Made by a program: the position numbers and the translations under genes. A stretch of DNA of 60,005 nt, counting the filler, from Bipalium vagum (taxonomy: Eukaryota), in the NCBI GenBank assembly GCA_037834085.1. It is 3 parts of 3 records of this genome, joined end to end, with 100 filler letters (N's around TTAATTAATTAA, not from the genome) between each part and the next. Parts side by side here need not be neighbours in the genome. Positions count along the whole stretch, not along the records: positions 42,203 to 60,005 come from JBBMKC010050382.1; 2 more parts are not named here. One strand, given 5' to 3'. The notes below the pieces were generated by a model. That model ran no database searches. It worked only from the letters and a program-made list of their open reading frames with translations, and was not told the origin of the DNA. Positions 43,024 through 46,500 of the stretch are shown piece by piece (within the stretch, counting starts at the first letter, position 1; each line of letters opens with the position of its first letter).

Positions 43024-43141
43024 ATGGCTTGTTGTGTTACTGAAGAATACAAAGAGCAATTAAGAATTAATAAAGAAATCGAACGTCAACTACATAAAGA
43101 TAAAAAATCTTTCAAGAGTGAATTGAAATTATTGCTTTTGG
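43024..43141 (+). CDS. GNAQ: Galpha-q alternative first coding exon 1a ([40 protein letters not shown])
   Basis: 118-nt ATG-initiated exon ending G|gtaagt (phase 1). It is paralogous to exon 1b and compatible with the acceptor at 43746/43747. Confidence 0.85.
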
Positions 43142-43559
43142 GTAAGTTATAGATTTATAATTAAATTTCCTTTCTATTCTGATTTTTGTCTTCACTTTGT
43201 CAGTAACTGAAAAAAAATAACCAACGTATGCCTGAATTTTAAATAAATAATTTTGGATATCAAGAGTAAATAATCTATAATAGGAAGCAGTTCATCACGG
43301 ACTTGTGCAAAACATTTCTACTTATTATTGATAACGAAAGTTAAAGTTTCTTCTAAAAGGTTAATTATTGATTTTGAACTTGATTAAATTGTTTAATTAT
43401 ACCATTTCGTCACTGTTGTTTACAAAATAAACGCCCTAATTGAAAGTTAATATTTGTAATTGTATGGCAGCCAAGTATTTAATTTAAATAATATTTTAAT
43501 TAGAGTAAAAATTACATCTTAAAATTGCAATAAAAAATTCTTTCTAATATTGCCTTAAA

Positions 43560-46500
43560 ATGGGATGCTGTTTAAGTGAGTTAGATAAAGAACAAAAAAG
43601 AATTAATAAAGAAATTGAAAAACAATTGAAAAAAGATAAGAAGGAGTCGAGAAGAGAATTAAAATTGCTATTATTAGGTAACAAAAAATTGAAATCAATT
43701 ATCCAGATTTTAGTTTGATTTTTTATTCGTCTTGTGTTTTTTACAGGTACTGGTGAATCGGGAAAAAGCACGTTTATAAAACAGATGAGAATTATACACG
43801 GCAGTGGATATTCTGATGAAGATAAGCGCAGTTTCATAAAATTGGTCTATCAAAATATCTATTTAGCAATTTACACATTGATTAGAGCTATGGAAAGTCT
43901 GGCTATTTCATATTCTAATCCTGAAAATACGGTAAGTAGATGTTGAGTGATTATATTTACTTGTTTTGTTTTCCTTCATTTGATCACTTTGGAGTTCCAG
44001 TAATTTATTGTTTAAAACTTTCAGAAATACGTCGAAGAAATCAAAGATATTGATTATGAGAGTGTTTCAACATTGGAACCCGATCATGTAGTTGCAATCA
44101 AATCTTTGTGGGCTGATGTCGGTGTGAAAGAGTGTTATGATCGCAGACGAGAATTCCAGCTGACGGATTCCGCCAAATAGTACGACTTGGTTCTAATTGC
44201 ATTTTGTTCTCTTTTAAACATTTTTTTCTATCGAATTGATTTCTTCGGTCTTTCTGCCTTGAAATGCTTTCCAATCTACAAAACGAAATTAAAATGATTT
44301 ACATTATTTTCCGCATCTCTTGTCGGATAATAATTCAATTGGATTTTGATAAAATCAATAAATCAATACTTTAAAAATTAAATAAATACATTGTTTTTAA
44401 CACTTCAATAAATAAGTACATAATTCCGACATATTTTTTATGCCCCGCAGTATAAATTAGTAATATTGACCGAACTCCATTAAAAATTGAAATTAATCGA
44501 TTAAATATGGATTTTATTTAAAAAATCTCTTTAATGACTCCACGAAAAGTCATTTAAAAGATTCTTTGAGATTTGATACGTAAGTTATTTATTGGAGAAA
44601 GATTAAGATATAAAACTAATTTGAATAACGTTTTCCAATCTATATACATTTGTGATCCTCTTTTTTGACATAGCTAATGCCTGATATATTTGATTCTAAA
44701 ATGACTTTAAAAAATTCTTCGCGTTGGAATTCAGGTTTCATAAAAGATTGTAATTATTTCATTTTTGTTTTTATTAATCATTTATTTATAATAAAATAAT
44801 TTCTCTGCTCTACCAATGGATCCACTAGATTCACGAATTTTTCTAATTTGGGTTCTAGTCATTATTATTTTCAATGATCAGTTTCTGGACTTTCAAATTA
44901 AAAATATTGATTCAGATTTATCTTAGTGTGACCTGCTAGAAATGAAGATCAACTGCAATTGACTTCAAGTGACAAAACAGTAATGTTTTGCATAAAAATG
45001 TATGCGATGGTAAATGGGTTTAGAATGCGATAAAGGAAATAAATTAATTTTCAGAATAAGTATTAAATTAAAGTAAATTTTCTAAATCATTATGAAAAAA
45101 TGAGGGTTTTATTTATAATTAATTTATTAGTCAATCAAACGTAAAAGTAAAGAGGCCAAGAAGTAACGTGAAATTAATTTTAGTACTCTTAAGTGTTAGT
45201 AAATATTAGGTGACATAAAAAGTTTCACCACTTTTTAAGTAAAAAACAAACAACTTTTTTCATATAAAAAAAACTTTATTGAATCAAACATGTTTCATTT
45301 TATTCATTAACATTTTGATATTTATCTGCTAAATTAATCACTGTAGAATTTCTTAAATTTCTGATCAAAAAACTTTACAATGTTCTTTTCAAAGTTTTCT
45401 TTTTAAATCATTGGAACTCCATTAAAAAATTCTGTAGAGACAGAAAAAATTGGTAGTCCAACGGTGGACTATATTATAATAGTGGAATGTATCAAAACTT
45501 CCTAGTCAAGCTTTTTTGACGAGTTATTAAAGATGTGTTATCGGGTGTTCGTTGTGGAACACTTCTTTTCAGTTGAGTAATTCAGGTCGGTTTTTTTTAC
45601 ATTTCTTGATTTTATCTTCAAGATGCTGTTAATAAAATATAGAATCAATTGTTTGACCAGATTACGGTACTTCATAATGCACGATTCCTTTCAAATCTGA
45701 GAATCAGATATCACCTTTCTTGCAAAAAAAATCTTGCCTTTCAACTTTTTGTGGAGTTTCATTTTTTTGGATCACGATCTTTATCCTACATTATTATCAT
45801 TCATGATTCAGTTTTGATCTCCGGTTATCATATTAATAGTTCAAGTTCATTTTTTCAATAAAGATTCACAAATATAAATCACAAAATTTTCACAATTATT
45901 TGTTCTAATAATTTGATATCATCGATCGATTTATTACAATTGAATTTCAAACCTCTATACTACTTGTAATTCAAATTAAAATAATCATTGACAAAAAACT
46001 AAGTTTAATTAAAAAATTAATAAAATAAAAATTCTTTCATTTCTTGTTTTATGTTGACTTCATCTAATGATTCATTTACTAAATATTGATGTATAGTTTG
46101 TTTCTTACTTATACCCATCTTAATTTAAAGTACGATAACTTATTCAAAAATTTTGTTATTCTGATAAAATTAATTTAGATAGTGGAAAACCACCATTTTA
46201 GAACTTTTAAAAAAATATATCTCCATTAATTGAATAAACTTAAGACGATTTTTTATTTTATTTGAAATCAACCTGAAGTTGTTGGATTTTAAATTGTATT
46301 ATGAATAATTCATATTTGAACATCGTCATTATTTTATTGTTTTTTTAATTTTATTTTCTTCCGAATTGTTTTAGTTTGTTATTTCTTTTTTTAATTATGA
46401 AATCTAAAATATTACTTTTTTTATTTTTTGTATTTCATATTTATCCTTAAATTACATTTTATTTTTGATGTTTCATTTGACTGTGTGACTTAAAATTATA

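Follow-up and report, generated by a model that had tools for sequence, protein, structure and literature searches.

Two tandem first coding exons in a flatworm-type Gq alpha-subunit gene of Bipalium vagum: a candidate switch of the membrane anchor

The Gq gene and its paired first exons

The DNA analysed here (the window) is a stretch of 60,005 nucleotides (nt) from Bipalium vagum (assembly GCA_037834085.1). One of its pieces, positions 42203-60005, is very AT-rich (19-34% G+C in each 1 kb) and contains a gene for the alpha subunit of a Gq-class G protein, whose first coding exon is present as two tandem copies, hereafter exons 1a and 1b. The gene has eight coding exons with fitting phases (Table 1), and with either first exon it gives 1062 nt, corresponding to 353 codons and a stop. 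Among the matches listed, Gq proteins of flatworms and other invertebrates are likewise 353 residues long. The N-terminus encoded by exon 1a begins M-A-C-C-V-T and that encoded by exon 1b begins M-G-C-C-L-S.

Table 1. Exons and upstream reading frame of the Gq alpha-subunit gene (positions along the window).
Feature	Positions	Strand	Description
Upstream open reading frame (ORF), 9 codons	43014..43043	+	Out of frame, overlaps the exon 1a start; ATG 10 nt before the 1a ATG, A at -3
Exon 1a	43024..43141	+	ATG + 39 codons + 1 nt; donor GTAAGT; Ala2; Cys3/Cys4; 9 Lys + Arg
Exon 1b	43560..43677	+	ATG + 39 codons + 1 nt; donor GTAACA; Gly2, Ser6; Cys3/Cys4; 12 Lys + Arg
Exon 2	43747..43931	+	Behind the common acceptor; completes the Gly codon; P-loop TGESGKS; Pfam G-alpha, E 1.9e-17
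Exon 3	44025..44179	+	Phase-2 end; splice sites, Pfam
Exon 4	50298..50426	+	Preceded by a 6118-nt intron; splice sites, Pfam
Exon 5	50481..50610	+	Switch region; Pfam, E 1.2e-21
Exon 6	52090..52243	+	Splice sites, Pfam
Exon 7	52296..52403	+	G5 box, T-C-G-T instead of T-C-A-T
Exon 8	54214..54296	+	Stop codon; tail ...LKEYNLV

Both first exons are exactly 118 nt long and end in phase 1 with ...LKLLLL followed by G|GT. The sole acceptor downstream of the two (...ttttttacag|GT, 43746/43747) leads into the sequence that completes the split glycine codon and continues with the P-loop. Equal length and phase, an ATG and a donor proper to each copy and one common acceptor, which are the marks of a tandem duplication, were all found in this pair. 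The exons are set 536 nt apart, with 418 nt in between; the intron behind exon 1b has 69 nt and the distance from the exon 1a donor to exon 2 is 605 nt. Aligned without any indel, the two exons are identical at 79 of 118 nt and at 27 of 39 residues, and this similarity was limited to the exon and ended at its borders. The local alignment of the two exons scored 43 against a shuffle mean of 16.2, a value reached by none of 500 shuffles, whereas the 300 nt upstream of each copy were unalignable (score 23, shuffle mean 28.0, reached by 473 of 500) and the downstream flanks scored 15 against a mean of 12.2 (59 of 500). When each exon was searched against positions 42203-60005, including the 6-kb intron, exon 1 recovered its twin with an E value of 1.4e-14, and second copies of other exons of the gene were not found (next best E 0.02 or worse). 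The initial annotation had placed two ATG-initiated exons of 118 nt with phase-1 donors before a shared acceptor at 43747, and had reported a difference in the hinge (KSFKSE vs KESRRE); coordinates, phase and peptides all proved to be correct, and the hinge difference is real, the translations reading SFKS in exon 1a and ESRR in exon 1b at residues 29-32.

The two-exon arrangement is not a scaffolding artefact, since a single Logan contig of 4875 nt from sequencing run X1 spans positions 42677-44400, and with them both exons, with 0 differing letters and 0 gaps, its depth being even at about 24; the assembly may itself have been made from the X1 sample, and the contig does not necessarily represent an independent animal. 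This excludes a scaffolding error; the initial annotation had named an assembly artefact of exon 1a as a possible objection. The scaffold has N gaps elsewhere (51617-51716 and 53812-53911, both intronic), which, together with the possible origin of X1 in the assembly's own data, would leave some room for an assembly or haplotype artefact in which alleles or collapsed paralogues were set in tandem. We regard such an artefact as extremely improbable, because the one contig runs through both exons without differences at even depth, and because 33% of bases differing and unalignable flanks are unlike alleles.

The gene was searched exon by exon throughout, and the identities given for exons 2-8 are sums over separate exon alignments. 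In the PDB the best matches of exon 1b were G11/Gq (E 6.6e-11) and the best of exon 1a was Gq (E 1.6e-9), while true Gi chains matched the first exons with E 5e-3 or worse. The possibility that exon 1b was taken over from a Gi/o gene was considered and ruled out by these best matches to Gq/G11. Six of the seven exons from 2 to 8 matched Pfam PF00503, colinearly over profile positions 29-316 (E 1.2e-21 to 3.6e-4), and exon 8, of 26 residues, gave no Pfam match. Exons 2-8 were about 84-88% identical to flatworm Gq proteins: 265 of 308 residues for the Gq of Echinococcus (P0137), 265 of 302 for P0122 and 269 of 308 (87%) for P0142, the closest relative among those compared. P0142 is a full-length flatworm-type Gq from JGI environmental data, and its start, M-L-C-C-M-T-E-E-Y, is like that of exon 1a. 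A metatranscriptome contig of the same origin (L051:148-1206) encodes an uninterrupted flatworm-type Gq relative of 353 residues; with its first 45 residues as query, the top matches were the annotated Gq proteins of Schistosoma, Trichobilharzia, Fasciola, Echinococcus, Cichlidogyrus, Opisthorchis, Clonorchis and Paragonimus. Because the PDB, Pfam and flatworm Gq matches agree, the gene is, by its sequence, the canonical gene for a Gq alpha subunit in a flatworm-type genome rich in A+T, which bears out the class to which it had initially been assigned.

Divergence of the two copies

Of the 39 base differences between exons 1a and 1b, 10 are at first, 8 at second and 21 at third codon positions. 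By the Nei-Gojobori method 19 of 19.7 synonymous sites differ, which is saturation, and 20 of 97.3 non-synonymous sites, which gives a proportion (pN) of 0.205 and a distance (dN) of 0.24. Since the synonymous sites are saturated and the flanks cannot be aligned, the duplication is old. A difference at 19 of 20 synonymous sites would be improbable unless the synonymous proportion (pS) were at least about 0.6 (P = 5e-4 at 0.6). At a pS of about 0.6, a copy evolving neutrally ever since it arose by duplication would be expected to have changed at about 41% of its non-synonymous sites on its own branch, and the probability of 20 or fewer non-synonymous changes among 97 would be 1.3e-5, so a long-dead copy was rejected. 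In addition, when neutral copies were simulated at 0.3, 0.6 and 1.0 substitutions per site (local base composition, substitutions only, without indels), start codon, open reading frame and GT donor all survived in 1.2%, 0.13% and 0.035% of them, respectively. The low pN and the rejection of a neutral copy therefore indicate that both copies have been constrained over most of their history. The initial annotation had supposed that both exons are maintained and had proposed a dN/dS comparison between them; the present count, with its pN of 0.205, its saturated synonymous sites and the rejection of neutrality since the duplication, agrees with that supposition.

Exon 1a is identical to the N-terminus of P0142 at 29 of 39 residues and exon 1b at 30 of 39, so the divergence has been roughly symmetric; the first exons have diverged from P0142 about two times as far as the remaining protein has (~13%). 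The flatworm Gq proteins of Schistosoma, Fasciola, Echinococcus, Cichlidogyrus and others resemble the gene studied here in their 353 residues and in the signature R-I-N-K-E-I-E, the lysine of which is kept in both exons. Further flatworm states are kept in exon 1a at T6 (as in P0142), E8 and Y9, and in exon 1b at K21, K24, R31 and R32; the E-E-Y motif of the flatworm proteins is common with exon 1a only. Those listed have a single N-terminus, with the consensus M-[F/S/L/A]-C-C-[R/M]-[S/T]...[R/K]-D-K-K-D-A-R-R-E and never with Gly2, and in this exon 1b differs from them. Judged by the relatives compared, none of which has it, Gly2 of exon 1b is derived.

The candidate myristoylation site and its rarity

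Among G-alpha subunits the Gi/o families are myristoylated, and the Gs, Gq and G12 families are not; the membrane binding of the last three relies on reversible palmitate, basic residues and Gβγ. The consensus for N-myristoyltransferase consists of Gly2 after the initiator methionine, a small uncharged residue at position 3 and Ser or Thr at position 6. Exon 1b conforms to it and exon 1a fails at position 2. The cysteine pair which, without Gly2, is the hallmark of Gq is present in both copies as Cys3/Cys4, and is preceded by Ala2 in exon 1a and by Gly2 in exon 1b. The net charge of the N-terminal segment is +4 in exon 1b, with its 12 lysines and arginines, and +2 in exon 1a, with 9. The 1b form is thus a candidate N-myristoylated Gq, and since the Gly2/Ser6 site and the additional basic charge point in the same direction, it should be firmly anchored and the 1a form more mobile and more dependent on palmitate.

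According to the excerpts of the papers cited from here on, Gq/11 is a non-myristoylated family, and in non-myristoylated Gα subunits an N-terminal basic cluster is thought to compensate for the absent myristate (review PMC8003949). The two palmitates on the cysteine pair of Gq are required for membrane binding and signalling (PMC9626947). The closest counterpart of exon 1b is the engineered 'AG' mutant of mammalian Gq, whose first residue is Met7 and in which Gly replaces Ala8; it is described as bearing one myristate and two palmitates (PMC9626947, with reference to Evanko et al. 2000). This mutant is said to be held more firmly at the plasma membrane, where it stays when unmodified Gq redistributes, and in combination with an activating mutation it resists the inhibitor YM-254890 (PMC9626947). 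When the AG change was applied to the human Gq N-terminus, the first seven residues were identical to those of exon 1b. The AG mutant is man-made and differs from exon 1b, which is natural, at residues 8 and 9. In a mutant deficient in Gβγ binding, added myristoylation restored palmitoylation and membrane binding but not signalling, and I25 of an Ile-Glu pair of mammalian Gq is needed for Gβγ binding (PMC9926304); this pair is kept in both copies (I19, E20). The initial annotation had argued that an M-G-C-C-L-S start would add a myristate to a protein that otherwise carries palmitates only. As a prediction this reasoning is sound, Gq/11 being described as non-myristoylated and the AG mutant, with the same first seven residues, as myristoylated.

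Searches for other Gq proteins with this start indicated that it is rare, as judged from the best matches listed in each case. In a word search with the exon 1b ORF, which gave 402 matches from 406 candidates, the best 120 included 91 with MACCLS, 16 with MECCLS and a single one, P0001, with MGCCLS. P0001 is a 45-residue ENA fragment from a contig of 817 nt; 40 of its residues, corresponding to exon 1b and the following glycine, are identical, and the read-through into the intron diverges (NREIF vs NKKLKS...). Such a pattern is consistent with a relative, or with a diverged copy, that has conserved the exon but not the intron. An M-G-C-C start was not found in the best 120 of 1232 full-length matches. 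HMMER searching of 1.84 billion cluster representatives yielded 637 matches at E <= 0.001, and among the best 150 of these P0001 was the sole MGCC, with 10 M-A-G-C-C and 1 M-L-G-C-C; that library holds one representative per 50% cluster, within which N-terminal variants can hide. The DNA pattern M-G-C-C-x-x-[D/E]-x-x-K-E-Q-x-R-I-N, a narrow one that demands K-E-Q at positions 10-12, had 0 matches in the JGI metagenome contigs. The string MGCCLS was not found in the main texts of the literature searched, nor was a natural myristoylated Gq found in that on Gαq myristoylation or on alternative first exons; supplementary tables of planarian G-protein sequences may bear on the N-termini of planarian Gq.

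A profile scan of the JGI metagenomes gave 587 pattern matches, of which 149 were relatives and 80 were kept as Gq first-exon loci, 45 of them genomic and 35 resembling complementary DNA. The collection thus does contain Gq first exons, but none of the 80 had an M-G start. One locus (L075) had seemed to have a G-C-C start and was rejected, as it reads M-A-G-C-C and belongs to the Gα14-like type. The frame breaks directly after LKLLLLG in 44 of the 45 genomic loci, the deviating one (L080) reading …LKLLL and then FG. A flank of at least 600 nt was available on at least one side in 43 genomic loci and on both sides in 23, and a second copy of the first exon was found in 0 of the 80 loci (tblastn, E <= 1e-3); these are almost all non-flatworm and have little bearing on close relatives.

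Exon use, known parallels and other features of the locus

The frame upstream of the exon 1b ATG is open for only 4 codons and contains no AG, and therefore exon 1b cannot be an internal coding exon behind exon 1a. The presence of both exons in one message was ruled out, there being no in-frame acceptor and there being stops in between. With one exon only per message, exon 1b would require a transcription start or a spliced-leader acceptor within 43142-43559. Between the 1a donor and exon 1b there is a sole pyrimidine-rich acceptor-like site (43181..43203, + strand, with ...tcag| at 43202-43203); this tract with its CAG lies 62 nt past the 1a donor, and exon 1a spliced to it would meet a stop after 5 codons. 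The site may serve as the point where a spliced leader is joined to 1b messages, or it may be a dead-end splice. Both start codons have G at +4; at -3 exon 1b has A and exon 1a has C, and the 96 nt ahead of the exon 1b start contain no ATG.

In the explanation that we favour, the first coding exon underwent an ancient tandem duplication, after which both copies were retained, and each message would join either exon 1a or exon 1b to exon 2. Exon 1b would be served from between the two exons, either by a transcription start of its own or by a spliced-leader acceptor, and the products would be two Gq proteins of 353 residues differing at 12 of the first 39. The 1a form would carry only the two palmitates usual for Gq, and the 1b form would be N-myristoylated besides and would have three more basic residues in its N-terminal helix. 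By analogy with engineered mammalian Gq, the 1b form would bind the membrane more firmly and rely less on reversible palmitoylation. On balance, and from sequence comparison, we lean towards the two being functional alternative first exons that differ in their lipid anchor, a membrane-anchor switch of Gq. The fuller proposition, that by the choice of first exon one gene gives a natural myristoylated Gq beside a palmitoyl-only Gq and so sets how firmly or where the protein binds the membrane, is offered more tentatively. Instead of a second promoter, spliced-leader trans-splicing in the first intron might determine which exon is taken. The split into a photoreceptor and a general isoform, given as an example in the initial annotation, is a guess.

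Several points weigh against this explanation. The estimate of selection is based on 39 codons, and a recently dead copy looks the same as a live one; one of the copies may have died recently. No promoter or spliced-leader site was identified for the exons, and a search of sequencing runs for the locus returned one run, X1, which is not on record as RNA. The overlapping, out-of-frame ATG 10 nt upstream, with A at -3, should lower the translation of exon 1a. An exon 1a-like sequence was not found by word search (1 candidate, none scored), a search that is weak as it required exact shared words and a narrow length range. P0001 may stem from another species or from the same one, and the departure of exon 1b from the AG mutant at residues 8 and 9 belongs here too.

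The upstream ATG, the C at -3 and the empty word search for exon 1a would also fit the use of exon 1b only, exon 1a having fairly recently lost its function or acting only as an upstream ORF that damps translation. The short intron behind exon 1b, of a size typical of the gene, and the identical exon in P0001 favour this too, as does the more aberrant sequence of exon 1a at residues 29-32 (SFKS), R31 being nearly invariant in an alignment of 19 sequences. However, exon 1a retains an ATG, an open frame, the cysteine pair and a consensus GTAAGT donor and agrees with P0142 at 29 of 39 residues, its E-E-Y motif is the state of the flatworm relatives and a long neutral history was rejected for it, so we consider the use of exon 1b alone unlikely. 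The converse, in which only exon 1a is used and exon 1b is an intronic relic, is less likely again. An M-x-C-C start without Gly is the Gq state throughout the matches listed, P0001 apart, and exon 1b does sit within what would be a 605-nt intron of exon 1a; but exon 1b is intact and constrained, has the stronger start context with no nearby upstream ATG, keeps R31/R32, which exon 1a has lost, and is identical in P0001 despite the differing intron read-through.

Both exons could also be used without any meaning for lipidation, either because the 1b form is not myristoylated in vivo or because the forms are interchangeable and only their promoter regulation differs. A precedent is the first-exon pair of Drosophila Gαo, which differs in 7 residues and for which the excerpt of PMC7599900 reports no lipidation change, and residues 8-9 of exon 1b are unlike those of the engineered mutant. 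Against this, Gly2 with Ser6 is the classical requirement of N-myristoyltransferase, the basic charge of the two forms differs in the same direction (12 vs 9 lysines and arginines), and a mammalian Gq that begins with these seven residues is reported to carry myristate (PMC9626947). We judge this alternative improbable, if slightly less so than the use of exon 1b alone, and keep to the two exons as alternatives with different anchors.

Alternative use of first exons is already known as a mechanism in G-alpha genes, and the natural systems most like the present one are Drosophila Gαo and GNAS XLαs. Drosophila Gαo has, like the gene described here, two alternative first coding exons with common downstream exons, so that only the N-terminal helix differs (PMC7599900). 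Its two proteins belong to the Go class, come from exons 6 kb apart and differ in seven residues, with no change of anchor class described in the excerpt, whereas here the exons are 536 nt apart, 12 residues differ, Gly2 would have been gained and the protein is a Gq. At GNAS an alternative promoter and first exon give the membrane-anchored XLαs (PMC9294334), a natural case, in comparison with Gαs, of the more firmly anchored G-alpha variant by alternative first exon that is predicted here; the XL exon is long and unrelated, and the gene is imprinted, of vertebrates and of the Gs class, unlike the homologous duplicate exon of this Gq gene. The Gαq gene of Drosophila (dgq) is likewise one Gq gene with isoforms, and it has tissue-specific splice forms, eye-specific ones included (PMC5765363). 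In the listed insect Gq isoforms the N-terminus is single and the variation lies at the C-terminal end (…TCATDTENIRF… vs …TTATDTENIKL…), and not in the first exon as here. As a separate observation, insect Gq proteins (P0148, P0166, P0212 and others) have a common N-terminus and two C-terminal types, one of them reading …T[T/A]ATDTENIKLVFCAV…. The new element in B. vagum, as judged from the sequence comparisons, would be a homologous pair of exons in a Gq gene, one of which adds a candidate myristoylation site.

If the explanation is true, the Gq class would here have its first natural member anchored, in the Gi/o manner, by myristate and palmitate. A natural Gq with permanent myristate would cross the divide between Gi/o and the Gs, Gq and G12 families, as the natural counterpart of the AG laboratory mutant. 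Should both forms be produced, a mobile and a firmly anchored Gq would come from one gene, and this would be a simple natural system for studying the contribution of reversible anchoring to Gq signalling. Movement, eyes and regeneration are processes for which Gq is important in flatworms (excerpt of PMC10078920).

Some other features of the locus were observed. At the edge of the piece, 42203-42350 is a high-copy repeat, at which the summed contig depth in run X1 was about 51,000 and 5,500 in the first two bins, compared with about 24 at the gene. Within 51540-51770, around the N gap at 51617-51716 in intron 5, the same peptide-length stretch occurs in one frame on either side of the gap, which looks like overlapping contig ends from scaffolding. 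Overlapping ORFs in three frames at 55708-56150 resemble by eye a decayed mobile-element gene; a transposase was rejected for them, as there was no Pfam match at E <= 0.01.

Substitution of the alanine of the G5 box speeds the release of guanosine diphosphate in other G-alpha subunits. In exon 7 this box is not intact, as codon 52397-52399 gives T-C-G-T-D-T instead of T-C-A-T-D-T, and alanine was present at this position in all 104 Gq proteins that cover the motif among the best 120 listed. The glycine may be a one-base sequencing error, the contig check having covered 42677-44400. Finally, intron 4 (50427-50480), of 54 nt, is in frame and without stops, so that one ORF (50269-50652) spans exons 4 and 5, and its retention would add 18 residues directly ahead of the DVGGQ switch region. 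At the local base composition, the chance of such a stop-free in-frame intron is about 1 in 5.

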